Origin: Aplysia californica
Lineage: Eukaryota
Reading direction: 5' to 3'
Length of the DNA stretch: 64,000 nt
NCBI RefSeq assembly: GCF_000002075.1
Contig: NW_004798120.1
Coordinates: forward strand, 107,848-171,847
Shown one piece after another: positions 12,990 through 33,262 of this stretch; the first letter of the stretch is position 1; each line of letters opens with the position of its first letter. The notes below the pieces were generated by a model. That model was not told where the DNA came from, ran no database searches, and was given only the letters and a program-made list of their open reading frames with translations. The position numbers and the translations under genes were made by a program.

Positions 12990-13454
12990 ATCTGTATCGT
13001 CGTCAAGGATGATACCAACAATAGACACACCCAGGAGAGGGTACAAGTTTTCTACTGTATACTCTAAATGCAAGAGCCGCTGCTTTGATCCGTGTCTGCA
13101 TCCTGCACAAACCGTCATCGATTGGTATTTTACCCTGAAGCCTGAAGACTAATGCGGGCCACACACGAAACAGGTCGTCCTCGGGATCTGTGATCCGAAG
13201 GCGATCCTTGAGTTTTGTCCTGAGGCCCACTGAGGCGACCTGGGCCAAGTGCACAGACAATTTTGCCACAAGAGGGATTGACTGCAACATAAATATTCCT
13301 TGCAACACGCAGATCATACGATGGATCTTTTGTAATGACACTGTTCCGAACGGCATTTGCGTGAAAATGTTTCTCGTAACTATCGAGCTCCTCGTATGCT
13401 TTATGTCTTTGAGGTGTCTGTTGCCGTCCTCTTTGAACATAATTTTCCAAAGGC

Positions 13455-15286
13455 ATTGTATTTTGGGATGGTTTTGGCTCTTCCTCTCAGTCATTAGTTC
13501 TAAAGATTTCCTCAGTGATCCGTGGTTTTTGGGTTGAAGCAAGAAAGGAAAAAAGATCTTTGTACACAAGAAAAGCAATTGTCTTTTCTAATGACTTACG
13601 ACCCAACCGGTACAATTTCCACTGTAAATTGGACATTTAAGATACTTGATGTATCGTCTGAACGGGAATGCACAAAACAAAAACTAAACAAAACACCAAA
13701 ACAGCAGTGTAGATATTACTCAAAAACGCTTTCAAATTCAATCCGATTTATTCAGTATTTTGTAACAAGATAAAACAATTAGACAAACAATTTCTTTTTG
13801 TACCGGGTCTTGTACAAGTTCTTTAATCACGCAGACATGTCAACCGAGATGCTGGGTGAGGCAAAGAGAAATAAGGGTACATTGAAAATGTAAAATCCAA
13901 TAGTGATCAACAAAGAGACTAGAGACCCGTAGCAAGAAGTGGGGCACCATTGGACGAAAATATAAGAAATGGTGGGTTGCGTTACAATTGTCTTTTTTAG
14001 TCTTTTAACCCCCCCCCCCCAACACACACACATTTATCACGCTCACCCAGTCCAAAACTTTAAACTACAGATTTACTTCCCCTCATTAAGCCGGTAGGTT
14101 GTTCTCTTTTCAATCGTCCCCGTGGACCTGCTCCATCTAGTGAGTGTACGTGCTGACCCGAGTGTAGAAAGCCGAGACAACTCCCCTGCCACAGCCGAAG
14201 CCAGTGGAGACAATCCTGCCACAACAGTAGACACCTGGTCTTCCAGCTCGCTCAAACAGCAGGGGGCTCCCAGAATGTTCCTGTACCATACATTGAGGAG
14301 ATGTCAAAGAAGGGTTCAATGGAACATGGAAAAGTCGTTTTGTTCATTTCGATCATTTAGGTTTGTCTTTACTCTTCAATGTGCAGTCAAACTTGTACAA
14401 GACTAACGTCCAATACCGACAATTGGTCTTGGACATATAGTTGTTTTGGACTTTCGTATTGAAAATTCAAAAAGGGGAGGATCTTTTGGGCGAAGCCTTT
14501 TTAATTGGCAGTCGATAGAGCTTTAAAAGGAAATGAATCTGACGATGTTCAATCTAAAATGTGTATATTATTGCGATTGAACTTATTGGAATTTGAAATT
14601 CCCAGATAAATAGATATTTTAAGAAAATGAATCAAGCTTTAAGGGAGGGGGTGGCAATTTTAAATGGACCATTTTGGGTCAATTTACGGTATCAAGACTT
14701 AAAATCGTAATACTTTAACAGTTGTAAATCTAAAAAATGCTTAGTCTTTTGTGTTACAATCATCTTTAAGATTTTCAGTCCAAGAACTATTTTGTCTATT
14801 CTGTAACAAAATGTCAATTTTTCGCAAATCTTCAATTTCATAGCTTTTCTCATCTACATTTTAAAATTTTCTCTTTGATTCCAAAGAAATTTTCAGGGCT
14901 TGTAATTCACACCATAACCTAACTATATAAGGGGAAAATCAAATCGATGCTTTCATAAGCAAGTTGCATGTGTGACTGACAAAGTCACGGGCATGAAGGG
15001 AAGGTCAGTTATCCATCTCTAACAACTTTTCCTTTTCAAAATATCCAAGATCCCAATAGTACCAAAATGTTGTATTCTATCAATCATTTATGTTGGTAAA
15101 CAGAAAATCTGTTGTACTTTTATGAGAAGTTTTTTTAATTTTCATATACTCCCGCCATTACCATGGTAACGGCAGACTTTAAAAAATTCAAAGTTACATT
15201 TTAGAGATATTTTCCTGTTATACCTCCATGTTAAAAGGCTTTATCTGAAAGGTCATAGTTACCGAGATGGGCTTATAAATCTGCCA
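13455..15286. repeat. Left arm of ~1.8-kb inverted duplication (partner 22147-24321); probably a DNA-transposon relic
   Basis: Colinear reverse-complement matches, e.g. 13480-13555 vs 24220-24295, 13690-13830 vs 23300-23450, 14090-14460 vs 22720-23090 and 14935-15270 vs 22160-22490. Confidence 0.9.
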
Positions 15287-15299
15287 TTCCATCTTTTCG

Positions 15300-18200
15300 A
15301 CCTCCCAAGCCCACTACTAGACTGGGCCAAAGAAAGTGGAAGGAGCGGCCTTTTAGACAGCCCGACCGACGACGAACTACAAAAAATAGACTTTAAAAAG
15401 GCACAGAAAAAAAATCCAAAAAGAACAGACGAACGACAACAGCAACGGAAACGACAGTGACGGATAGGAAGAGGACATCAAACGACGTAGTACAACAGAA
15501 CAGATTTCAACTACTCAGCGGAACTGACGACGATAGCGACGGTGACAAGAACAGAAAAAAGAAATTAGCAAGGACAGAAGACAAAGTAGAAAACATGACG
15601 ACTGACAGTGACTCATCTGAATTCTTTTAATGATGTTCCCATTGTTTAATTCTTTTTCCTTGAGCACCACAGGATGAATGAACTGAAAGTAATGACACTG
15701 AACACAAGAGGAACGAATGGTAAGCTGCCCCAACTAACACACCTCATTACCACACACAAGCCAGACTTTTTATTACTACAAGAAACTAACATAGACACCG
15801 AATACAAAGCACAAGCATACACACACTCACTAGGGCTCAGTAAAGGCATTTTCAGTCTAGGTAAATTTTGCAGAGGAACAGCCATACTACAAACATCCAA
15901 CAGATGACACATCACACAACACACAACAAACGAGACAGGTAGAATAACCACCGCAACGATCACCGACAAGACAGACACCTACAAATTGGTCAACATTTAC
16001 GCACCGGCTGTCCCAAACACCCGAACAAGTTTTTACGAAGAGCTACAGAGTACACTCAGCACATCTACACACAAACTCATACTGGCGGGAGATTTCAACG
16101 TCACTTAAGACGACAGAGACATAATGGGGACACAGGTAGGAAAAGGGCGACAAGGCAGAACAACACTACAACAAATAATAGACACACACTATCTGAAAGA
16201 TAGCCACAGAGAAACACACGTAAACAAAAATGATACAACGCACAACAATTCTGGAATAGATAGAGCAACCAGGATAGACAGAATCTACGTACACGACACT
16301 GACAAAATCGCACAGTGCGAACACTTAGACCACACGTTGACATTCACAGACCATAAAGCAGTAGTAACAACAATAAACACAAACAACACGCAGCCGAGAC
16401 GATCACCGCACTGGAAATTTAACAACACACTACTCGACAACGAAGAATACACAACCATGATTACAGAAACGATCAAACGACACACACAAAGACTACAAAC
16501 TAACAATGCTAGAGAGACATGGGACAACTTAAAACGTATCATTAAACTGGACACAATATACAAAGCCAAAGAGATCTGTAGAAGTAGGAGACATAGACAG
16601 CAACAATTAGAATACAGAATAGAACTCGCAAAACAGTTAGGGTTACAAGAAACGCAAAACATAGTGGAATTCAGGGAAGAGTTAGAAGAACTAAATCAAA
16701 TAAAATATAGAGGAGCTCGCATTCGAACTAAATACCCAACAATAAAAGACGAAAAACCAACACCAGTATACCTGGCTTTGGAACAAAACATACAAAAACA
16801 TAGAATGATAACAGCAATTACAGACGCACAAGGCAATACACAAAAAGACACACATAAAATAACAGACGCCTTTCAAAATTTCTACAGCGCACTTTACGCT
16901 GAACAAGATACTGACGAATCAGTACAAGACAATTACATGCAACACGCCGCACAACTCACACACGACCAACAACAAATCCTCGAGACAGATATTTCCATAA
17001 CACACCTGCAAAACGCACTCAACTCGATGAAGAAAAACACCTCGCCCGGCCCTGATGGCTTGACAGTCGAGTTTTACCTCGCTTTCTTCCCCGTTTTGGC
17101 CCCCCTCTTTACAGCGATGGTAAAAGAAAGCTATGAGTTAGAATGTTTGCCGGAGTCACTAAACTTATCGTACATATCCCTCATTCCGAAAAACTCAGGC
17201 TCCCCTCTGGGAATGAAAAACTACCGTCCCATATCTTTATTAAACGTAGACTACAAAATTATCTCCAAGACCCTAACGAACAAGTTGAGACCGTTCATGC
17301 AACACGTAATACACACAGACCAAGCCTGCGCAGTACACGGTATATAGAACAATACAAGATCACAACCACACACTTAGGGACATTATCACATACGCAGAAG
17401 ACAAACAGTTAGACACATGCATACTTTCCCTAGACCAGACTAAGGCATTTGACAGAGTGTCTCATTCGTTTTTACACAAAGTTTTAGAAAGAAGCAATTT
17501 AGGCCCAAAGTTTCAGAAATGGATTCAAATATTATATAAAAAAACACAATCAAAAATTCTAGTTAACCATACCCTGTCAGATGCCTTCAATATAGGAAGA
17601 TCAGTTCGACAAGGAGACTCCCTAAGCCCACTTTTATATGTATTAAGTTTAGAACCTTTACTAAATTCAATCCGAAAAGACCCACAGATTGCAGGTATCA
17701 AACTCCCGGGAGGGGGGGAACAAAAGTTAATAGCGTTCGCGGACGACACACATTTTTCCCCAACTAATTCTAAATCTATACTTCAGATCGTTAATCATTT
17801 TCGTTATTTTGGCAGGGGGAGCGTATCAGAAATTAATGAAACAAAAGGTCAGGCGATAAAGTTAGGAAAATGGAAAGATAGGGCAAACGATCCGATCCGA
17901 TTAAATTGGGTGCAAGAAATAAAAATTTTCGGCAATTACTATAGGAAATCAAGAGACCAAAACTCCCCAACTAAATAGAATGACCTTGTCGAGCAGATCC
18001 AAACCCTCTTACCTAAACTCTATTACAAACAGACATCAATTTCCGGCCGCAGTATTTTAATCAACACACTCGTCATTCCAAAAATTAACTACGTCACACA
18101 AACGATAGACCCACCACCCCAGTTTCTCAAACGAATAAAACGACTCATCAGACAATTTATTTTCAAAGGAACTATCCAACGCATCAGACATACAACCTTA

Positions 18201-19503
18201 ATACAGAGCAAGTTCAACGGAGGGATACAGTTACAAGACATAGAGACAAAAACACAAGCCTATATAGATTACAACACATTAGGAACATTGCGAACAACAA
18301 AAAAGACACCCCTTAGCTCACTACTACATAGGATTACACGTCACAAACCCAACACCGATGGACAACACAATCCCACACTTTTTCGGACGACAACCTACAT
18401 TTTACAAAACATGCCTTCGAGCATACAGACAACACGCCAAATTACTCACTCTCGCACGCACAACGAAAGACATATACACAACGCTAGTAAAACGACAAGC
18501 AACACCATTATACGATCAAATTAAAAGAGGTAGAATATACGCAATCCTAGACTTTTCGGAAACATTTCAAAATTTACACATCAAAGACACAACACCCTTC
18601 CAAAAACAGATCACGTATAGGATACTTTACAACAACACCCCCACAACTCAAGCAAAGAAACACGGAAAAGATAGGTGTAAAATATGTAGACGAAACGAAC
18701 GAGAAACAGAAGAACATATATTCTACACATGCCCGCACATTCAACAGACCAAACACGCACTAGCAAAATTACTCAACACAAACCCAGACACACAGGTAGA
18801 CATATACAAAGCAATCTTTCTAAACATACTCCCACCACAAACAACAGACAACCACAGCATTAGACTTCAAATCTTAGCAGCGTACAGAGAAGTCATTTGG
18901 CAAGTTAGACTACAAACAGCCTTTAACGACACTACCCACACACCCAACACTATTTCGCAATATTTTCAACAGAAAATTACTTACACCTTTAAAACAGAAA
19001 AAAATGGGCAGTATTTGAAAGATATTTGAGCTGTGGCGAGAGTGAGTGAGTAAATGATTTGAAAGCAAGCAAAACAACGAGGACAGAGACCGAACGGACG
19101 AATTGTGTTAGACAAGACGAGACTGCTCTGTGAGCACAGAGTAACAACGACTCGACAACCCAGGGGTCGAAAGGCGACGAGTGGAAGAGAACACAGCTCA
19201 GGAATAAACGAAATAAAATGAATTATTAAATGGAATATGTACATGGAACGAACGAGAATGAATGAAAAATCATTTATGTGTATGCAAGAGGGGGAGGGGG
19301 AAGGGGTACGAAAGAAAAAGCGGACGGGGATGAGCCGCAAGTGTATTTGTCGAATGAATCTGTGTGAGAAAGAAGGGGACACTAATGAGCCCCACAGTGA
19401 ATGACTCTTGTGGTGTTATGTTTTTGTTGTAAAACCCCCCAAAAATAAAATAAAGGCTCAAATGAAGCCCAAGGGGAAGGGAAAAAAAAAAAGAAAAAAA
19501 AAA
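15300..19503 (+). mobile_element. Tx1/L1-clade LINE, decayed: ORF1 3' end, disrupted ORF2 (15674-19029), 3' UTR and poly(A)
   Basis: APE endonuclease motifs LNTRG, LQET, NIYAP, GDFN, RIDRIY, TDH. RT motifs SPGPDGL..EFY, NYRPISLLNVDYKI, DQTKAFDRVSH, VRQGDSLSPLLY, FADD. C-terminal CKIC..ETEEHIFYTC zinc knuckle. Internal stops and frameshifts at ~15905, ~16105, ~17345, ~17976 and ~18260-18350. AATAAA ~19444 and A-tail 19482-19503. Confidence 0.95.
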
Positions 19504-19933
19504 GGTGAGCACTTTGTCTACTTTCCACTTTTCTCCTTTTTATTTATGATGGTCTACAATTTAATAAATGCACACCACTTCAGGAAAGGGAGATGCCTTG
19601 CTATCTGCAGCAAGTTGTGTCTGTGATAATCCAAGTTAAATTTTCTATTTCCGTTACTTTGTTCCCTCTTTCCTAAACTTCTGTCGTCTTTATCTTCTTT
19701 GTCACTCTCCCTCATCTTCGACACTTTTGACCGTAAAACGCTCACTAAAACGCTAGACCTCGTTTTCTGTACTCAGAAAATCATTAGTTCTTTCGTTCTT
19801 GTTTTCTTCAGCCAACATGGCAACGCACACCGTCTCATTCCTGGAAATGTCCCTCTTTTTTCCTTAATGCACTTTGAGAGTACATACTCGTTCCTTCATT
19901 CGTTCATACTTTCTTTTTCAGCACACCGACAAA

Positions 19934-21716
19934 ATGAAAACTTACATGACTGTCGCGCTGTTTGCAATGTCCCTCGTGGTCATTGGCGCACAAGGTGAGT
20001 ATTGTTGACGTAAATATTTATTTTAGGTTTGAGGAAAGAGGCACATACCTACTCGTGGACCCCTCCATAGTAACTTGTAAAATGAAGGTAAACCTTTTTA
20101 GGATTCCGTTACATTTATACTTTAAGGGCACAAGGCCAGCCTCTGTTGCAATGGTTTGGTCTTTCACCTTTGCATTAAAGAAAATGGGAGTTCAGTTCCC
20201 GTATTTTCATATTTCAAATCTCACTTTACAAGCGATTCGGGTTTCTTTTTAGGATTCGGGTGGTTTCTTTTTAGGCTCAATGTTGGTTGTGATGGTGCCA
20301 GTATTTTCTTTTACTGGCAAAGAACATTCGGGAGCAAATTACTTGTGGGTGCTCTGTGGCTCGCTCCTTATCAAACATTTGTCGCCTATTGTCCCTTCAT
20401 TTTTGTTAAGTCAATAAAAGACAAATGCATTTTTTGGAACTCCTGAATAGACATAAAGGTCTTGAACATCTATCTCTCACTGGCAAAATTGAAGGCCAAC
20501 GAGCAAGGGGTAAGCCCAGAGCATATCTTCTTAGGGAACCTAAAAAATTGGAAACGTGGAGAAATCGGGAAATCATAGCTTTAAGAGCACCCAAGTAAAG
20601 GAATAAATATAGAACTATGATCGCCGATGTCTGTCTCAGATCTGGCACTGGATGGTGAGGATGAATCGGTTTCTAAGGTCGCGCCACAAAAAATTATATG
20701 GTTCAAAGAACACTAGAAAGTAAGGAACCTTCCCTTTTGGGAAAGTCGGGTAAAGGTCTAGTTGAGGCCTCCATTCTGAAAATGCTTGACCTACTTCATT
20801 TAGTTCTCCATTGTAGTATTAGGAAGGAAGCTCTCTACTAGACCTTTATCGTGGAGAGCTTATTTTTAAAGTATGCCATAGAAACTATTACTGTCAGCAT
20901 TTTTAGCTTTGAACGTAACCTAAACCTCGAATATAACCGTATCACATTGGTTTTCACCTTTGTCAGTGCCCGAGGAGGCAGAGCAAGAGCAAGGACCAGT
21001 GCCCGAGGTAGAGCAAGGAACAGTGTCCGATGAGGCACGGAGAGGACTACGAGCGTGTTTCTTGTGCAGGGTCGCTATGAAAACTCTGGATGTGGTTCTG
21101 GATAAACTGTTGGAAGAGGGTGTCCCAGAGGTTGGCTTTTTGTATAAAACTACATATATATATTTTTTTAATTACAGGGTTTTCAACTCCCTTTCAGCAA
21201 TGTCTGGTCATTTGACAGTACCTCTGTAAGTGCCTTTCCCAAGGACGACTTCGGATTTTGCAAGAATAATTAACACCAAGAAACTTAAGTATGGCGCCTT
21301 GTGAAAAGTTTTTTTTACTCTCTCTTTTGTACAGTTTAAGCACATGCCTTTCTATCTCTGTGCTTGTAGGCTTTGCTTCGATTTGTTATTTAAACGGAGT
21401 AGCCTAAATGTCTTACGTTATTGACTTGCTTATAGCATACTACATTTTACGTAGATTTTTAAAAAGTAAAGCGCCATAAATACTTGCCTCATTTATTCTC
21501 GTACAGTAACTCAGAAATGTTTGTTCTGAAATTTGACAAATTCCTTTTACCTATCAACAGGAGAAAATTGCTGATGCTCTGTCCAATGGTTGCGGCAAAC
21601 TTCCAAAATTCTTGAGACCTACATGTAGGAAGATTGCCAAACCAGAAAATGTGGGCCTGCTGCTGAGTCTTCCTTCCAAAGGTGTGTGCCGCAAAATCCG
21701 TCTCTGTCGTTTCTAG
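19934..21716 (+). CDS. Secreted saposin-like protein (SAPLIP, NK-lysin/amoebapore type), 126-aa prepropeptide; exons 19934-19994, 20967-21130, 21561-21716
   Basis: Phase-consistent GT-AG splicing (phase 1, then 0) gives MKTYMTVALFAMSLVVIGAQ-VPEEAEQEQGPVPEVEQGTVSDEARR-GLRACFLCRVAMKTLDVVLDKLLEEGVPEEKIADALSNGCGKLPKFLRPTCRKIAKPENVGLLLSLPSKGVCRKIRLCRF*. It has a signal peptide, an acidic propiece, a dibasic site and six Cys in saposin-B spacing (CxxC ... C ... C ... CxxxxxC). Confidence 0.9.
20455..20665 (+). mobile_element. RTE-clade LINE 3' fragment in SAPLIP intron 1
   Basis: Encodes GLEHLSLTGKIEGQRARGKPRAY (RTE C-terminal GKIEG.R.RGRPR motif). A related fragment at ~28600-28920 shares the tail tgatcg.cgatgtctgt..agatctg. 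Confidence 0.7.
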
Positions 21717-22146
21717 AGGTAAATCTGCGGGACATTCAGTTTTGCGGGACATTCAGTTAACTCTTTGGGTTTTTTTTAATTGTCACACTTCTATCATTCA
21801 CATTTACTCCATAAAAAAAAAATGCTGGCGATTAAAAGAATACTCAGCTGGTTACAAGCTAAAAGTACTCAAAGCAGACAGGCCAATAGCATCAAACTTT
21901 TTTCTTGGCGCTTAACAAAATTAAGTGTAAAGTATCTACTCAACCGATCAGCTTCTTAAGGCCCTATGTTACCTAGGATCATGTGTGAAGGGAGGGGGGG
22001 GGCACGTAATCTGATAGTGATAGTAATGAGCAATTTAGTATGCGTATTTTACAACTTTCTGATGCCAATTTTTTTCCCCTGATGCATTGAACAGTTCCCT
22101 TAAACTTAAACTGAGAAAGGTCGGTCCTTACAATTTAGGGAGGGGC

Positions 22147-24321
22147 TGGTTTATAAATCTCGGTAACTAGGACCTTTCAGATAAAGCCTTGTTGTAGCAT
22201 GGAGGGAAAACATGAAAACATCTCTAAAATGTAACGTTAATTTTTTTAAAAGTCTACGGCCACCACGGTAACGGCAGGAATATTGAAAATACAGCTTTCA
22301 TGACAGTACAAAGGATTTTTTAAATTTATCAACCGAAGAATACAATTTGGTACAATTGGGATCTTGGATATCTTGAATAGGAAAAGTTAGAGATGGATAA
22401 CTAACCTACCCCTTCATGCCTGTGAATTCGATTACATAAAATCATCCATGATGCATCTTGCTTATGAAAGCATAGATTTGATTTTCCACCTGTTTAGTTG
22501 GGTAAATACCGTAAATTGACCCACAATCGTCAATCCCCTTTTCATTTATCTGGGAATTTCAAATTCCTGTAAGATTAATCGCTATAATATACACATTTTA
22601 GATTGAACATCGGCAGATTCATTTCCTTTTAAAGCTCTATCGACTGCCAATTAAAAATGCATCGCCCAAAAGATCTTCCACTTTCCATTCCCCTCCCCTC
22701 TCCCCTCTTTAGATTTTAAATACGAAAGTCCAAGAGAACTATATGTCATGTCCAAGACCAATTGTCGGTACTGGACGTTCGTCTTGTACAACTTTGACTA
22801 CATTTGAAGAGTAAAGACACACCTAAATGTACAAAAATGGCTTCTCCATGTTCCATTGAACCCTTCTTTGACATCTCCTCAATGTATGGTACAGGAACAT
22901 TCTGGAGCCCCCTGCTCTGTGAGCGAGCTGGAAGACCAGGTGTCTACTGTTGTGGCAGGAATTGTCTCCACGGGCTTCGGCTGTGGCGGGGAGGTTGTCT
23001 CGGCTGTCTACACTCGGGTCAACAAGTACACTCACTAGATGGAGCAGGTCATTGGGGACGATTGAAAAGAGAACGCCTACCGGCTTAATGAAACTAAATC
23101 TCAAAGTTTTGAACAGAGTGAGCGTTATAAGTGTGTGTGTGTGGGGGGGGGGGATGCTGAGTTTGTCCAATGGTGCCCCACTTTTTGCCACGCACCTCTT
23201 GTCTTTTGTTGATCACTACTGGATTTTACATTTTCAATGTACCCTTATTTCTCTTTGCCTATTTCGCCCAGCATCTCGGTTGACATGTTTGTGTGACTAA
23301 GGAATTTGTACAAGACCCGGTACAAAAAGAAATTGTTTGTCTGCAAATTGTTTTATCTTGTTACAGAATACTGAATAAATCGGATGGAATTTGAAAGCGT
23401 TTGTGAGTAAATATCTACATTCCCGTTTGTTTTGGTGTTTTGTTTGGTTTTTGTTTTGTGGATTCCCGTTACGATGATACATCAAGTGTCTAAGGCGGGC
23501 CCTCCATACACGGCACATGACTTGTCGGCACGTGCCGTGGCTAATACCCCTCCCTCCATGGGCCATAGCACGACATCACAACACATCACAACCATGGATT
23601 CGTCTGATGAAGATACTCTTGATCATGTTAGCAATTCTAAATAATCGAAAAAAGAGGAAAAGGTGGATCATGTGGTGCAGAGAACATTTTCTATTGAGGA
23701 GTAGAGGAGAGTTTCATCGACCTTTCAGCTCCTTGATGAGACGTAGAGATGAGACATTGTTCTTCAACTACCTAAGAATGTCATACAGAACGTATGATGA
23801 ACTAAAGAACCTAGTGCTTCCTCGTCTACAACCAATTGGTTGTAATTTATTGTGAACCAATCGGGTTTTGGGGGTCCCAAAGAAGCGATCGGTCTCTCAC
23901 AAGTTCAATAATTTCTTTCTTGTAGTCATCCATTTTGGCAGCACACGACACAAAAAACGAGCAATGCAGCAAAGCAAGGCACGCAATGTTTCGTCGTGGC
24001 TGTGTCGTGGCGTCAATGGAGTGTACAACTCGAAATGGTTGTGTTTGATTTTATTTCGCACGCTTGCCATGTGCTGTGTGCCGTGTGCCGTGTGCCGTCT
24101 ATGGAGGGTCCGCCTTAAATGTCCAATTTACAGTGGTAAATTGAACCGGTTGGGTTGTAAGTCATTAGGAACGACAATTGCTTTTCTTGTCTTGTCCAAA
24201 GCTCGTCTTTTTCCTTCGTCTTTTTCCTTTCTTGCTTCAACCCAAATCATGGATCACTGAGGAAATCTTCAGAGCTAATGACTGAGAGGAAGAGAGCCAA
24301 AAAACCAATCCAAAATACAAG
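22147..24321. repeat. Right arm of the inverted duplication, interrupted by a Harbinger element
   Basis: Reverse complement of 13455-15286 apart from indels and the 23494-24114 insertion. Confidence 0.9.
23494..24114 (+). mobile_element. PIF/Harbinger internally deleted DNA transposon
   Basis: TIRs GGCGGGCCCTCCATACACGGCAC / GTGCCGTCTATGGAGGGTCCGCC, flanked by TAA and TTA. Internal frame KRWIMWCREHFLLRSRGEFHRPFSSLMRRRDETLFFNYLRMSYRTYDELKNLV matches the Harbinger transposase N-terminus (W...R..GEF..L....F.NY.RMS..FDEL). The empty site is visible in the other arm at ~13625-13650. Confidence 0.9.
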
Positions 24322-24403
24322 ACTAAAAATGCAGAGGCCAAGAAAGCTTGGATCGATATAAAATGTTCAGAAAATATGTATTAGATCTATAGGAAATGGG
24401 TAA

Positions 24404-25039
24404 AGCCCCCCACTCACTACACTGTTCCCGATCTCAAGATGGTCTTAAGATGAACTGACAATCGGATCTGTAAGCGATCTCATTTGTGCCCACACTACCC
24501 ATGCCAGCACATTTATCAAAATGGCTCCCACCCAAAGTAAAGTTGTTGCAACCTGTATATTGTTTCTCTAATTTACTCTATTGTTGTTGTTTTTTAAAAT
24601 GACAATATGCGGTTGAATTGTTTTGAATACTGAGGAAAAATCAACAAAGTACCCTCGTATACGATGATTTTTTCCCTCAGTATTCAACCGCATACGGTCT
24701 TTGAAAAAAAAACTAGCTGCCTGACGCAAAGAATGATTTATTAACGTTGCTACATCAGACGTTTGATAGCACTATTTCGTATCAAATCCCGCTAGCATTT
24801 GATTCTGAAGTAAGATTCGCAAAATTTTGACTTTGACACCCCTTTATTTTTAGCGTCGAGTAACCTGATCTCAGATTCGACTTTCAGGCTCGTTCTGAAT
24901 TCAAGCGATCGCACGGTTTGAGATTTTTAACTAAACAGTCCGGATTTTGGTCTTGAGATCATCTTGAGATCGTGTTCAGTTGGTCTTGAGACCATCTCAA
25001 GACAGGCGCACTTTTTAACTGCGTAGTGAGTGTCGGGCT
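24404..25039. mobile_element. Harbinger/Tourist-like MITE
   Basis: TIRs AGCCCCCCACTCACTAC / GTAGTGAGTGTCGGGCT, with sub-terminal tctcaagatggtcttaaga / tcttgagaccatctcaaga matches and TAA/TTA flanks. Confidence 0.7.
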
Positions 25040-27103: not shown

Positions 27104-28165
27104 CTATTTCTCCTCTCGTTTTCCCAGACTTCGTGTTGTGCCAAGTTTCCGCCACAAAGCCGCCACCTGCTGTCTGTAGCTGGAGTTGTAAGTGATGTAC
27201 ACAAAGATGTTGAGAGAGGAGCAGAGAAGAAGCAGAGAGATTCTGACAAGTCCCACAAGGCTATAGATTTCTCCAAGCTGTCTGAAGTCGTTGAACTCTG
27301 GCTCCACATAGGAAGCGTACATGATGAGAACGCTGGGTAGATTGCAGACGACAAACATGGCGGCCACAACCACCACAGATTGCACCGCCCTCAGCTCTTT
27401 TCCCGAGAGTTGTGCCCCCTTGGACGGCTCCTTGCTTCCTGGCAACTCTGAGGACATTCGGAATTTTGTCGCCTGTTTGAGTTTTCCGGTTAGGACAAAA
27501 AGACAGCTGATGACCACGACCTGAGAGATGGTTGGGTCTGCAGCCAAGACCAGGGGGTACAAAATGATCACTATCGTCTGCCGGTAGGGCGAATAATTTG
27601 GAATAACTACCGTTTTGTTCAAACGTGGGATAAATGCCCACCGAAATCCTATACTGAGAAACAAAGGAGCATAACAGGCAAAGCAAACTAGTGTAAGAAC
27701 AAGTAGGGTGGCCAGGACTTTTTTGATTGTGAAAATAAATTTGAACTTGAGCGGGAGCGCCACGCAGCAACACTTTTGAACCGTGAGGTAGACCGTGAAG
27801 AAGGTGGACATTTTGTAGGTCATCTGGAAACTGTAGAGCACCTGGACGTACAGCGTGTAGACAAGAGGGGGTGACGTTCCTATCCGGAAATCGAGAAGTG
27901 GATTCACAATAAAAAGTACAAGGGAAAGCAGATCGGTAACTGTGAGCGCAAAGAGAGTGATTGATGTCGCACTTTCCAGTATACCTGTTCTTCGAAATAT
28001 CTCCACGTTACACAGATTTGTGAGGATGCCAAACACAGCTATACACATGTTGGTGGTGCGGATGACATTTCTGATCATCTCAACACTGTAGACAACCGGG
28101 TGTGACGTCACTGGTGCAGTTACAGTACAGTTTAGCACACACGTTTCTGATACAACAGTTGTCAT
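27104..28165 (-). CDS. Intronless rhodopsin-class (7TM) GPCR, peptide-receptor-related, resembling gastropod chemosensory receptors (~353 aa from the ATG at 28165)
   Basis: Uninterrupted ORF with seven hydrophobic segments: TM1 FGILTN, TM2 LTVTDLL, TM3 end QKCCCVALPLKFK (DRY-position variant), TM6 FVVCNLP, TM7 SSLNIFVYITYNSSYR. N-glycosylation site NCT near the N-terminus. The ORF-track start at 28234 is not an ATG. Confidence 0.9.
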   Translation of the reverse strand: MTTVVSETCVLNCTVTAPVTSHPVVYSVEMIRNVIRTTNMCIAVFGILTNLCNVEIFRRTGILESATSITLFALTVTDLLSLVLFIVNPLLDFRIGTSPPLVYTLYVQVLYSFQMTYKMSTFFTVYLTVQKCCCVALPLKFKFIFTIKKVLATLLVLTLVCFACYAPLFLSIGFRWAFIPRLNKTVVIPNYSPYRQTIVIILYPLVLAADPTISQVVVISCLFVLTGKLKQATKFRMSSELPGSKEPSKGAQLSGKELRAVQSVVVVAAMFVVCNLPSVLIMYASYVEPEFNDFRQLGEIYSLVGLVRISLLLLCSSLNIFVYITYNSSYRQQVAALWRKLGTTRSLGKREEK

Positions 28166-28931
28166 GTTTTCAGTCACTGATTTCGATGTGAAGGAACGTA
28201 AAACGGCGCAAATTTTGTTTTCAAAGTGATACAAACAACCTTAGCTTAGCTCATTGAAGACGTGACATCTGGTCAATGAACAATGATTGAAGACGGGCTG
28301 GTTCGGGCACTTAAAAAAGAAGCAGCACATACAGAGTTTATTTGCTTTATCTGAAACTTTAAAAAAAATACAAGTGACAGTGTGATTACTATGACATGTG
28401 CAATTTCGTGTTTGGTGATAGGAAATGTGCTAAAACATTACCATTGGCCAGCTTCTGGTTGGGGTTGTATGTGCCCTCTATGGTACGTCCTTAGGGTGTT
28501 AAAATGTCCTTGAAGAAATCAACAGTGTTCGTTTCACCCACAGTCATATATTATGTCTTAGCACAAAAACCTCTATTGTATTCGTTTAACTCTGGTTGGA
28601 TGAACAAAGGGATCAAAGGAGGTACTACTTGAAGTAGCTCACGTGGGCTGCTCGCTGATAAAAACAACTATGAAGAGACGAATGTAGTTTCTGGGACACC
28701 TGTAGAGACAGAAAGGCCTTGACATCTAACTTTCACTTGTAAGATTGAAGGCAAGCGAGGCTGAGGTAGACCCAGAGCAAGTTACTTGGAAAGCCTAAAC
28801 AGATGGGCGACGCGGAAAGATCAGGATTACGTAGTTTTGTTGAGAGCATCAGAACAAAGAAACGACTTGCGAGCCTTGATCGACGATGTCTGTCGTAGAT
28901 CTGACAATTTTTTGATGAGAGTGGCCGAACC

Positions 28932-30647: not shown

Positions 30648-33262
30648 TTACTTTTACTTTTACTTTTTTCTTCCGCTTGTACCCTGGGGTGTCGCGGGGA
30701 GACACGGGCGTCTGTCTGCAGCAAGTCGTGTGGCCTGTAGGAGGGACATCCCGTGAGCTCTAAGGGTGTCTGCCACAGATTCACTCCATCGTCGCCTTGG
30801 TCTTCCTCTGGCTCTCCATCCAGAATATTTAGTGTTCTATGCTCTCAGAGCTGGATGGTTTTAGGGCATCCGCGTGAGGTGTCCGAACCACTTGACCTTT
30901 TGTTTTTCAATGTGTGATAGGACTGGTGTTGCTCCCACGGTGTCCCTTATGACTTTATTTTTAATTTGGTCTCTTCTTGTTTTGTTGACCGCTCTTCTTA
31001 AGCATTTCATCTCGCATGTGACCTGTTTCCTCTCTTAGGGCTTTTGATAGGGACCATGTCTGGCACTGGTATGTGAGGGTTGGAAGGAAAATGGCGTTGA
31101 TGAGCTTCGCCTTGGTGCTCATGGGGACATTGGGATGTTTCAGGAGAGGGCCGAGTTGGTAGCTGACTGCGTTGGCTCTCTGGCATCTAGTCTCTATTTC
31201 TCGATCTAATTTTCCATTTTCTGTGAAATTGCTGCCCGAGTATTTTAATTCTCTGCTTTGTTTTAGTTGGGATCCATTGATGTTGATATCCACTTTGCCT
31301 GGTCTCCTGTTAATTGTCATGACTTCTGTCTTGCTAATACTGATCTTCATGCCATATTTTTGGCAGCTCGCATTTAGTTGGTTCATATGCTCCTGTAGCT
31401 GGATCTTGTTGTTAATCATTGCCAGGTCGTCTGCAAACATGAGTTCGTTGAGTGCCTCTGGGTCTGGATTGGCCTCTTTTGTTATCTGGTCTATGTAGAT
31501 CACGAAGAGCAGAGGGGAGAGATTCTGACTCCGGATGTTACTGGAAACCAGTCTGATGTTCCACTGGTAGTTCGGACAGCGCTTCTGCTGTTGGCATAGA
31601 TAGCCCTGATGTTGTCTAGCAGTTGTCCCTTGATGTCGTACTGCTCTAAGATCTTCCATAGCTTGTTTCTATTTACTCGATCAAAGGCTTTTTCTTGATC
31701 CACAAATACGAGATGAAGATCTTTGTCGTGTTCCAAAGCCCTCTCACACAGTTGTCGGAGTGCGAAGATTGCATCAGTGCACCCTCTTCCTTTTCTAAAA
31801 CCAAACTGGGCGTCACTGAGAAGACGTTCGGCTTTTGCGCGAGTGCGTCGCTCTAGGATTTTTGCATACATTTTCCCCGCATGGCTGAGAAGAGATATGC
31901 CCCTATAGGTGTTGCAGTTGCAGTCTTTCTTGCTGCTCTTTTTTTCCATATTAGCACCACTATCGCATTTTGCCAGTCTGCTGGTACTTTTCTTTCTTTC
32001 CATGCTTTCTGGAAGACGATTGTAAGCCAATGTATTCCGGTTTCGCCGCAGGCAAGGATGGCTTCGGTTGTGATGCCATCGTCTCCAGCTGCCTTGTTCT
32101 TTGGACTAGTCTTCAGTGCTTCTCTCACTTCACTCTCCAGGGTGGTAGGTTCTGAGTGCTCAGGGTAGTTGGCGGTGGAGGGGCACTGTGTGTTTTGTGC
32201 CTGTACTCCTGATGGGTTTAGTAGTTCTTGAAAATATTCTTCCCATCTTTTTATTATTCCTTTCTCTTCGTGTAGAGCTTCTCAATTAGTATTGTTGATG
32301 ACAGTGGTGGGTACATAGGGTTCGTCTCTCACTTTCATTGTCTTTACCTTCTTGTAGAACTCTCTTGGTGAGGTCTTGCAGGTTTCACTTAGTTTTTCGC
32401 CATACTGGGTCCATGACTTTTCTTTTGATGTTATAACGACTTTCTTGCTGTGTCTTCTTGCAAGTCTATATTTAATGTAGTCCTCTTCGTTTTTTTACTT
32501 GACCAATACATTATACAGTCTCCTTTTTTCCTTGATAGCATCCCTAACTTGGCTGTTGCTTTTCTGTGTTTTCCTCTTGTTTTCTTGGTACCGCAGACTT
32601 CTTTCATTGTGTCCAGGAGAGTTGCTTTGAAGGTATCCCAAGCTTCCTCTACGGTTAGTATTGTAGAGTTGATAGAGCCTAGCTTTTCATTTAGCGTGCT
32701 TCTGATCTGAGCCTGCACCTGATCATCTCCAAGTTTATGCCTATTTAGTCTCTCTTGCTGTCTTTTATGGTTTTTTGGTTTTCTTTCTTTCTTGGTGGTC
32801 AACTTTGTGATGATTGGCCTGTGGTCTGTGTCCAGATCTGCATTGGAGATGGCTCTTGAGTCTGTGATTGTGATCCGCAGTCGTGATCTCGTTAATATGA
32901 AGTCGATCTGTGATGAGACCATGATGTTGTTCCATCTGTATCAGGTGTAGATCTGAGAGGCCCGGTCCTGGAAGAAGGTGTTGGTGGTGAATAAGTCGTG
33001 CTCTGCACACAGTTCCAATATATGATTGCCGTTATGATTGCATGGTGTTCTGTGGTCACTGTGTGGACCCAGGTGTTTTTTCCACGGTGCTCTTCTCTCT
33101 CCGACTCTTCCGTTGAAGTCTCCCATTACATAAAAGTCTTCCTCGTCTGGAGTGCTGCTAATTAAGTCCGAGAGTTGTTCGAAGAAAGAGTCCTTTTCTT
33201 TGTCTGAGTAGGAGTCGTTGCACGGTGCATACACCTGGATGTAGTTTGTGGTCCTTTTGCCC
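30648..33262 (-). mobile_element. RTE-clade LINE, 5'-truncated and decayed
   Basis: Endonuclease motifs QVYAP, MGDFNGRVG, NTFF, SQIDFIL, TDH. RT motifs KAAGDDGI, YRGISLLSHAGKMYAKIL, QFGFRKGRGCTDAIFALRQL, FVDQEKAFDRV, LSPLLF, LMFADD. Multiple frameshifts; (AAAGTA)n tail at ~30648-30668. Confidence 0.95.

Follow-up and report, generated by a model that had tools for sequence, protein, structure and literature searches.

A hidden three-exon gene of Aplysia californica for a secreted, cationic saposin-like protein

Introduction

In mammals, amoebae and nematodes, cationic saposin-like proteins (SAPLIPs) of a single domain are proven effectors that attack membranes. Other phyla evolved such proteins independently: amoebapores, caenopores and naegleriapores are single-domain SAPLIPs, small and either secreted or granular, and are directed against microbes. 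Naegleriapores are cut from multi-peptide precursors, and amoebapores act through low pH and a C-terminal His rather than through high net charge. The saposins themselves are acidic (mean net charge -4.6 in the domains compared below), mostly glycosylated and lysosomal, and are likewise cut from multi-domain precursors. Here we describe a gene at positions 19934-21716 of a 64,000-nt stretch of Aplysia californica contig NW_004798120.1 that encodes a secreted single-domain protein of this kind. The whole stretch is called the window below, unprefixed coordinates are positions in it, and its contig is C850 where contigs are compared.

The Aplysia product resembles NK-lysin (pig, 1nkl) and granulysin (1l9l) in being a single domain of ~78-80 residues, with six cysteines in the same order, cationic and made from a precursor. 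It differs from both in having no sequence-level match to them, in its descent from mollusc saposin-domain exons, and in the acidic Pro/Glu piece and RR site that precede the domain. With saposins A, C and D (2dob, 2gtg, 3bqq) and with a giant prosaposin-like gene on contig C304 of the same genome, it shares the cysteine spacing, an LP motif after the third cysteine (C3), the position and phase of an intron, and a predicted closed five-helix fold. Unlike the saposins, it carries a net charge of +8, has no N-glycosylation sequon, forms a single domain behind its own signal peptide and scores below the Pfam cut-offs. The literature searched, supplementary tables left out, describes no cationic single-domain SAPLIP for Aplysia or other gastropods, and its papers on Aplysia together with saposin or saposin-like were all unrelated. 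Nor were the family's locus and accession names found in it, although the supplements left out may list them. We conclude that the window gene is real, that it had not been modelled before and that it belongs to an Aplysia SAPLIP family not yet described.

A spliced gene within three short reading frames

The original prediction, made from the letters of the window, held that three small exons hidden from the open reading frame (ORF) track splice into one product. This is borne out: the exons sit within ORFs of 44, 89 and 34 aa that extend into intron sequence, and they are separated by GT..AG introns. The gene reads as follows, a slash marking each splice site:

19934..19994, +, exon 1, coding part: ATG, a 20-residue hydrophobic leader and the first base of a split Val codon
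19995..20966, +, intron 1: GT..AG, 972 b, phase 1
20967..21130, +, exon 2: acceptor ..TGTCAG/, 54 whole codons from 20969, donor GAG/GTTGGC
20967..21037, +, first part of exon 2: acidic Pro/Glu-rich piece with 8 D/E and zero K/R
21038..21043, +, proposed dibasic processing site RR: Arg codons CGG AGA
21044..21130, +, second part of exon 2: first half of the saposin-like domain, C1-x2-C2 and helix 1, ending in phase 0
21131..21560, +, intron 2: GT..AG, 430 b, phase 0, 10 residues before C3
21561..21716, +, exon 3: second domain half, acceptor ..AACAG/, 51 codons, C3-C6, TAG at 21714-21716

The exons of the window product were translated separately and its searches were run per exon. The donor of exon 1, G/GTGAGT, was read from the DNA and the per-exon translation and lies 20 codons plus one base after the ATG. 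A conserved ..TTTCAG/ acceptor 13 bases before that ATG suggests an upstream untranslated exon. After the RR site, exon 2 contributes 4 K/R, 5 D/E and two cysteines and exon 3 contributes 12 K/R, 3 D/E and four cysteines. The 80-residue, six-Cys domain with 16 K/R, 8 D/E and a net charge of +8, like the 8 D/E of the propiece, had been counted by hand in the original prediction, and the counts are exact. The spacing C-x2-C-x31-C-x10-C-x20-C-x5-C, a hand count that spans the exon 2-3 junction, matches that of canonical saposin domains, with which all six cysteines align in an alignment of the paralogue proteins. Reading frame, four splice sites, six cysteines and signal peptide are all intact in the window copy. 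A tblastn search within the window found neither a second copy nor any other SAPLIP exon.

Relatives, which the original prediction had proposed to look for, were found in the Aplysia californica genome (927,310,431 b in 4332 contigs). At C293:800674-801428 (-), exons 2 and 3 recur with 89% and 92% identity to the window. At C9:3154508-3156411 (-), all three exons recur, 85%, 51% and 58% identical in order. Splice sites and phases are preserved in both copies. The C293 copy is public protein P0003, XP_005101744.1 (LOC101863826, 162 aa), and the C9 copy is P0004, XP_005089895.1 (LOC101858678, 125 aa); each is annotated as 'uncharacterized protein', and their annotated junctions are homologous to those of the window gene. 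The leaders of the paralogues have a mean Kyte-Doolittle hydropathy of 2.65-2.76 over residues 6-18.

RNA data point the same way. Four runs were aligned to the window: X1, X12, whose RNA nature is a guess only, and X4 and X5, which are polyA raw-read runs of ~1.5 billion letters each. Outside a repeat in intron 1, described last, X12 depth is confined to the three exons, where it reaches 25000 (a recurring value and possibly a ceiling), and it is 0 across the intron-2 stretch 21179-21526. A 51-letter X12 contig matches 19958-19994 without a mismatch and then enters exon 2, of which it holds the first 13 letters. The joint between exons 2 and 3 of the window copy is not among the listed RNA joints and is based on coverage edges and on the homologous annotated joints. 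Splicing of the family is thus established by RNA and annotated junctions, and the gene at 19934-21716 is real: it is spliced and encodes a secreted saposin-like protein with a single domain. For the spliced transcript anticipated in the original prediction, exon 1 and exon 2 are bridged for the window copy, while most of the RNA carries the letters of the C293 copy, as weighed below.

Homology to the saposin-domain exons of the same genome

A hidden Markov model (HMM) built from 21 distinct canonical second-half saposin exons of the same genome recognizes exon 3 of the window, C293 and C9 copies at 20.9, 18.8 and 25.7 bits. Free shuffles of exon 3 reached the real score in 0 of 2000 cases for each copy; shuffles with cysteines fixed did so in 0, 1 and 0 of 2000. 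The best genome match of exon 3 outside the family is a Pfam-positive SapB_2 exon, C304:436042-436197, of the giant prosaposin-like gene. That gene region, C304:381000-446300, holds at least 27 SapB_2 exon matches over the Pfam cut-off; several of these exons are identical and lie in recent tandem units of ~0.9-1.8 kb, and a further tandem set stands on the small contig C2961.

Beyond the genome, an exon-3 profile of the three paralogues retrieved 55 proteins at E <= 0.001 from 1.84 billion representatives, most of them with many matched stretches. We ran Pfam on nine of the 55: two belong to the family itself, and all seven others carry SapB_1 and SapB_2 over the cut-off. Protein searches found no family-level orthologue outside Aplysia, the remaining matches being multi-domain saposin proteins. 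Against PDB sequences, the same profile gave 11 matches at E <= 10, nine of them saposin C/D or prosaposin chains (best E 0.016, C3-C6 aligned); NK-lysin and granulysin were not among them.

Gene structure agrees. Intron 2 interrupts the domain in phase 0, 10 residues before C3, which is the position and phase of the canonical saposin-domain introns in the same genome, where 14 of 18 first-half matches end directly at GT. The C9 copy also keeps N-x-S-E before intron 2, matching the canonical N-x-T-E. Sequence and gene structure trace the domain to the pair of exons that encodes a saposin domain in prosaposin-like genes of the same animal. The 'amoebapore-type' of the original prediction therefore expresses a resemblance of kind, not of descent. 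Its saposin homology stands on the exon-3 profile and the intron position; its NK-lysin/amoebapore affiliation fits less well, the sequence being nearer to saposins C and D than to NK-lysin or granulysin.

Predicted fold

AlphaFold models were made of the two paralogue proteins. The P0004 model (mean pLDDT, the predicted local distance difference test, 69.9) shows five helices, with the domain at 82-89 and the leader and acidic piece below 50; the P0003 model averages 77.4. Foldseek against the PDB gave no match at E <= 0.001, as is usual for an 80-residue domain. Its top rows are all SAPLIPs, among them saposin C (2gtg, template modelling (TM) score to target 0.63-0.64), NK-lysin (1nkl, 0.64-0.66), saposins A and D, AOAH and Na-SLP-1. 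VIA-align placed NK-lysin first as the best structural match of the C293 sister domain, with Z 8.4, a root-mean-square deviation of 2.2 A and 24% identity over 74 of 78 residues. Saposin A (7.5), Na-SLP-1 (7.4), saposin D (7.3), saposin C (7.1) and granulysin (5.3) scored lower, although saposins A, C and D are level with NK-lysin to within about 1 Z, and the first 22 rows are saposin-fold proteins throughout. The saposin fold anticipated in the original prediction is therefore what the paralogue models yield. Disulfides C1-C6, C2-C5 and C3-C4 are the predicted pairing. We hold the gene model and the SAPLIP fold with high confidence.

A family with a conserved signal exon and fast-evolving domains

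Aligned between the window and C293 copies, the exons show 6 differences in 138 bases and 7 in 153 (~95-96% identity). The introns and flanks of the two copies are just 83.5-85% identical, and their 5' structures differ. We considered the C293 copy as an allele of the window gene and rejected this on those two grounds; it is a paralogue. The C9 copy differs from the window gene in reading QR in place of RR, in retaining an N-x-S sequon and in a charge of only ~+3. The window copy, for its part, carries 8 extra acidic-piece codons relative to both paralogues.

The exon-1 region (19860-20040) has seven more genomic copies at 77-90% nucleotide identity, which makes at least 8 loci in total:

C9:3156276-3156411, signal-exon copy
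C65:162377-162531, signal-exon copy
C658:274147-274299, signal-exon copy
C658:276201-276319, signal-exon copy
C353:681824-681922, signal-exon copy
C37:581292-581412, signal-exon copy
C60:1967163-1967254, signal-exon copy

All seven encode nearly the same leader, end in phase 1 at GT and have a ..CAG/ acceptor at least 13 bases before the ATG. Each is followed by exons for saposin-like half-domains. Two of the resulting genes, which we call type A, have database models, P0056 (LOC101845481, 107 aa) and P0057 (LOC101857550, 108 aa), again 'uncharacterized'. They share the leader and the VPEEAE start, have a short pro-part that ends in RGR and a neutral domain, and score 22.8-23.8 bits against SapB_1, under the cut-off. 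P0004 matches P0056 at BLASTP E 5e-13.

Taken together, these loci form a new, lineage-specific Aplysia family of three-exon secreted SAPLIP genes. The window gene belongs to a type-B branch (C850, C293, C9) whose acidic piece grew longer and whose domain turned strongly cationic in two copies. The relatives are 'uncharacterized' or unannotated and are missed by Pfam, and standard immune-gene surveys of Aplysia would therefore miss them.

The signal exon is conserved across the 8 loci, and the mature domains are barely alignable. The ratio of nonsynonymous to synonymous substitution rates (dN/dS) is 0.72 for window versus C293 and 0.96 for window versus C9. Together these features look like those of secreted effectors that evolve fast. 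Outside venom, the family would be an example of rapidly changing mature domains behind a conserved signal exon.

The same architecture raises the question of a toxin. The target of the protein could be other animals (predators, competitors or their neurons) rather than microbes, in which case it would be a toxin-like or deterrent secretion comparable to the macro-conotoxins of cone snails, which are saposin-like. Gastropod toxin superfamilies have this architecture, in which the signal exon is invariant, the pro-start is conserved and the Cys-framed mature part evolves fast, and the extreme expression in one run (X12) would fit. A saposin-like fold is listed among the conotoxin folds (10.1101/2025.07.03.662903). 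However, the library profile, PDB sequence, Foldseek and VIA-align searches found no toxin similarity, and the six-Cys framework is that of canonical SAPLIPs. We regard a toxin as the least probable of the alternatives considered here.

The C293 locus has undergone a further change. XP_005101744.1 is a two-domain fusion whose 5' part falls in an assembly gap, in contrast to the single-domain window gene. Upstream of the C293 type-B exon 2 lies a type-A terminal exon:

C293:803100-803279, -, type-A terminal exon upstream of the type-B exon 2

Relative to the C353 copy, this exon lacks one base just before the stop, and the frame consequently stays open over a few more codons, up to a GT at which it is spliced onto the type-B exon 2. 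The fusion junction is present both in a 44-letter X12 loose end and in XP_005101744.1. That XP_005101744.1 is a mere mis-annotation was considered and rejected in part: its odd junction occurs in an RNA contig, so that the fusion transcript is real, and its start is incomplete where the 5' part of the gene adjoins a stretch of N. In the two-domain product the acidic piece lies between ..RSR and RR, placed like an excised spacer. By analogy, the product might be cut in the manner of naegleriapore precursors. The recent fusion illustrates a possible origin of multi-domain saposin precursors.

Domain charge and the acidic piece

To place the charge of the domain, we used 454 six-Cys saposin-pattern domains from the other 53 library-match proteins. 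Their net charge averages -4.6 (sd 4.1) and reaches +6 or more in 13 of 454. The cationic domain named in the original prediction is confirmed, and its +8 is unusual for the fold; the C293 domain carries +7 and the C9 domain ~+3. An N-x-S/T sequon is found in 301 of the 454 comparison domains and not in the window domain. In two other library matches, the multi-domain proteins P0047 (2524 aa) and P0038 (476 aa), nearly all saposin-pattern domains are strongly cationic (+6 to +11), and these proteins could be polyprotein precursors of cationic SAPLIPs.

The pro-piece and the domain vary together. Acidic residues before the site and net domain charge run 8/+8, 6/+7, 5/+3 and 3/0 to +2 among the relatives, a natural series for testing charge masking directly. 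The 8 extra codons of the window copy (24 bases, 21007-21030 in exon 2) appear to be an internal duplication of the preceding Pro-Glu-rich codons and add two acidic residues. Of the propiece and processing site originally predicted, both are present in the window copy; as a shared trait the RR site does not hold, being replaced in C9 and in type A.

A candidate mechanism and its weight

On our reading, the gene encodes a secreted prepro-protein: its cleavable signal peptide is followed by an acidic N-terminal piece, which is disordered, and by a single five-helix SAPLIP domain of 80 residues with six cysteines. This domain has diverged past the reach of Pfam, lost the usual N-glycosylation sequon and turned strongly cationic, within a family whose members share a near-invariant signal-peptide exon and the VPEEAE.. 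start while the mature domain evolves fast. Its positive charge, held mainly in the C-terminal half, would draw the closed helical bundle to anionic membranes or lipids, which it would then bind or perturb as NK-lysin and granulysin do. In the precursor, the acidic piece would mask the charge of the domain until removed at RR by a dibasic-specific convertase. We give this explanation as a whole, weighted to its functional part, a probability of roughly 45%. The membrane-active defence role is tentative. Activation by cleavage at RR is more doubtful still.

Several results weigh against this reading. In homology, the Pfam scan that the original prediction had suggested made no call: the models SapB_1 (PF05184) and SapB_2 (PF03489) did not recognize the domain, the three exons searched separately gave 0 families at E <= 10, and the paralogue proteins reached 14.5 and 18.3 bits against SapB_1, under its cut-off of 25.2. 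Across the whole genome, SapB_2 matched 35 places and SapB_1 matched 58, none of them at C850, C293 or C9. The first domain half (exon 2) has no significant match to canonical first-half exons, with 201, 224 and 21 of 2000 shuffles reaching the score of the three copies. In structure, the fold of the window domain is read from its 89-92% identical sister, and VIA-align Z values of 8.4 and below are modest, since helical bundles can score so by arrangement alone. In activation, the charge co-variation comes from 4-5 genes, and with genes so few and related the parallel is a hint only. The window and C293 copies have RR at the site, C9 has QR and the type-A relatives have RGR, so that convertase activation is probably not a family-wide feature. 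With Glu at P4, the RR site is also no furin consensus. Activation by cleavage at RR may hold for two copies only, or for none.

Expression of the window copy itself is the remaining point. The support for its transcription is the one contig bridging exons 1 and 2, which is of low depth (54.8) and is the sole contig exact for window exon 1. The abundant X12 exon-3 contig has the C293-type letters at 21594, 21600, 21640 and 21677, and the window-type letters were not seen in it at these four sites. X4 and X5 yielded 20 and 32 aligned reads, none on the three exons. The window copy is also absent from the protein collections searched, and a search of proteins with its exon-2 frame gave no match.

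These observations bear on a second account, in which the family is functional, the RNA stems from the C293 and C9 copies, and the window copy is a redundant, weakly expressed or silent, decaying duplicate. At depth 25000, the exon-3 contig of X12 is C293-type at 4 of 4 listed sites and run X1 at one; the window copy has no database protein model and four relatives have one; retroelement remains flank it; and the dN/dS of 0.72, computed from only 13 changes, is for that reason indistinguishable from neutrality. Yet frame, four splice sites, six cysteines and signal peptide are intact, and the exons are far closer to C293 (~95-96%) than the introns are (83.5-85%). A spliced contig also matches window exon 1 letter for letter, unlike the C9 reference, and rare variants get dropped from contigs, so that absence there proves nothing. 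We consider a decaying duplicate improbable.

A third account concerns what an expressed protein would do. It could be a non-lytic secreted SAPLIP that binds lipids or signals, comparable to saposins, MANF/CDNF or the saposin domain of AOAH, with its acidic piece retained. Its nearest solved relatives by sequence are saposins C and D rather than NK-lysin, and in structure NK-lysin leads saposins A, C and D, Na-SLP-1, CDNF and MANF by only 1-2.5 Z. RR is not kept throughout the family, and with net charges of 0 to +3 the C9 copy and the type-A relatives range from neutral to weakly cationic, from which it follows that cationicity is not a family trait. Against this, a charge of +8, clustered C-terminally, falls in the top 3% of saposin-pattern domains. 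The sequon typical of lysosomal saposins is lost, and a single-domain secreted format with dN/dS near 1 better fits an effector that faces outside targets than it fits a housekeeping carrier of lipids. We judge a lipid-binding or signalling role unlikely, though it is the strongest of the competing accounts. A membrane-directed secreted effector remains our preferred reading; were the protein inert on membranes, it would still represent a new secreted SAPLIP subfamily, of ordinary interest.

A bolder reading is a conotoxin-style superfamily built on the saposin fold in Aplysia. It would comprise at least 9 genes with a near-invariant signal exon and pro-start and a six-Cys SAPLIP domain diversifying at dN/dS near 1. 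The acidic pro-piece would lengthen with domain charge as a built-in antidote, and fusions of neighbouring genes would give two-domain polyproteins with excisable acidic spacers. The window gene and its C293 sister, as the most cationic members, would then serve the sea hare as antimicrobial or cytolytic effectors of the NK-lysin kind, produced in very large amounts by one tissue. This full picture is speculative, and we think it unlikely.

Surroundings of the gene

Broken retroelement frames with RVT_1 matches flank the gene:

16124-19029, +, broken retroelement frame with RVT_1 match
30961-33234, -, broken retroelement frame with RVT_1 match

The stretches 13446-15285 and 22543-24456 match the same part of the C293 locus (~6800-9260 of its extracted region) in opposite orientations; sequence downstream of the gene is therefore repeated, inverted, ~5 kb upstream. 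A single 376-aa open frame at 27104-28234 (-) has several hydrophobic stretches and looks receptor-like by eye; Pfam gave no match for it at E <= 0.001.

Intron 1 contains one further element, delimited by read depth and by loose ends on both sides:

~20396-20743, dispersed repeat within intron 1

The repeat is very abundant in all four runs, polyA RNA included, and intron-1 depth occurs only there. The X4 and X5 reads fall nearly all on it, with slight X4 depth in one other bin, 22136-22222. The repeat is probably a transcribed element resembling a short interspersed nuclear element (SINE).

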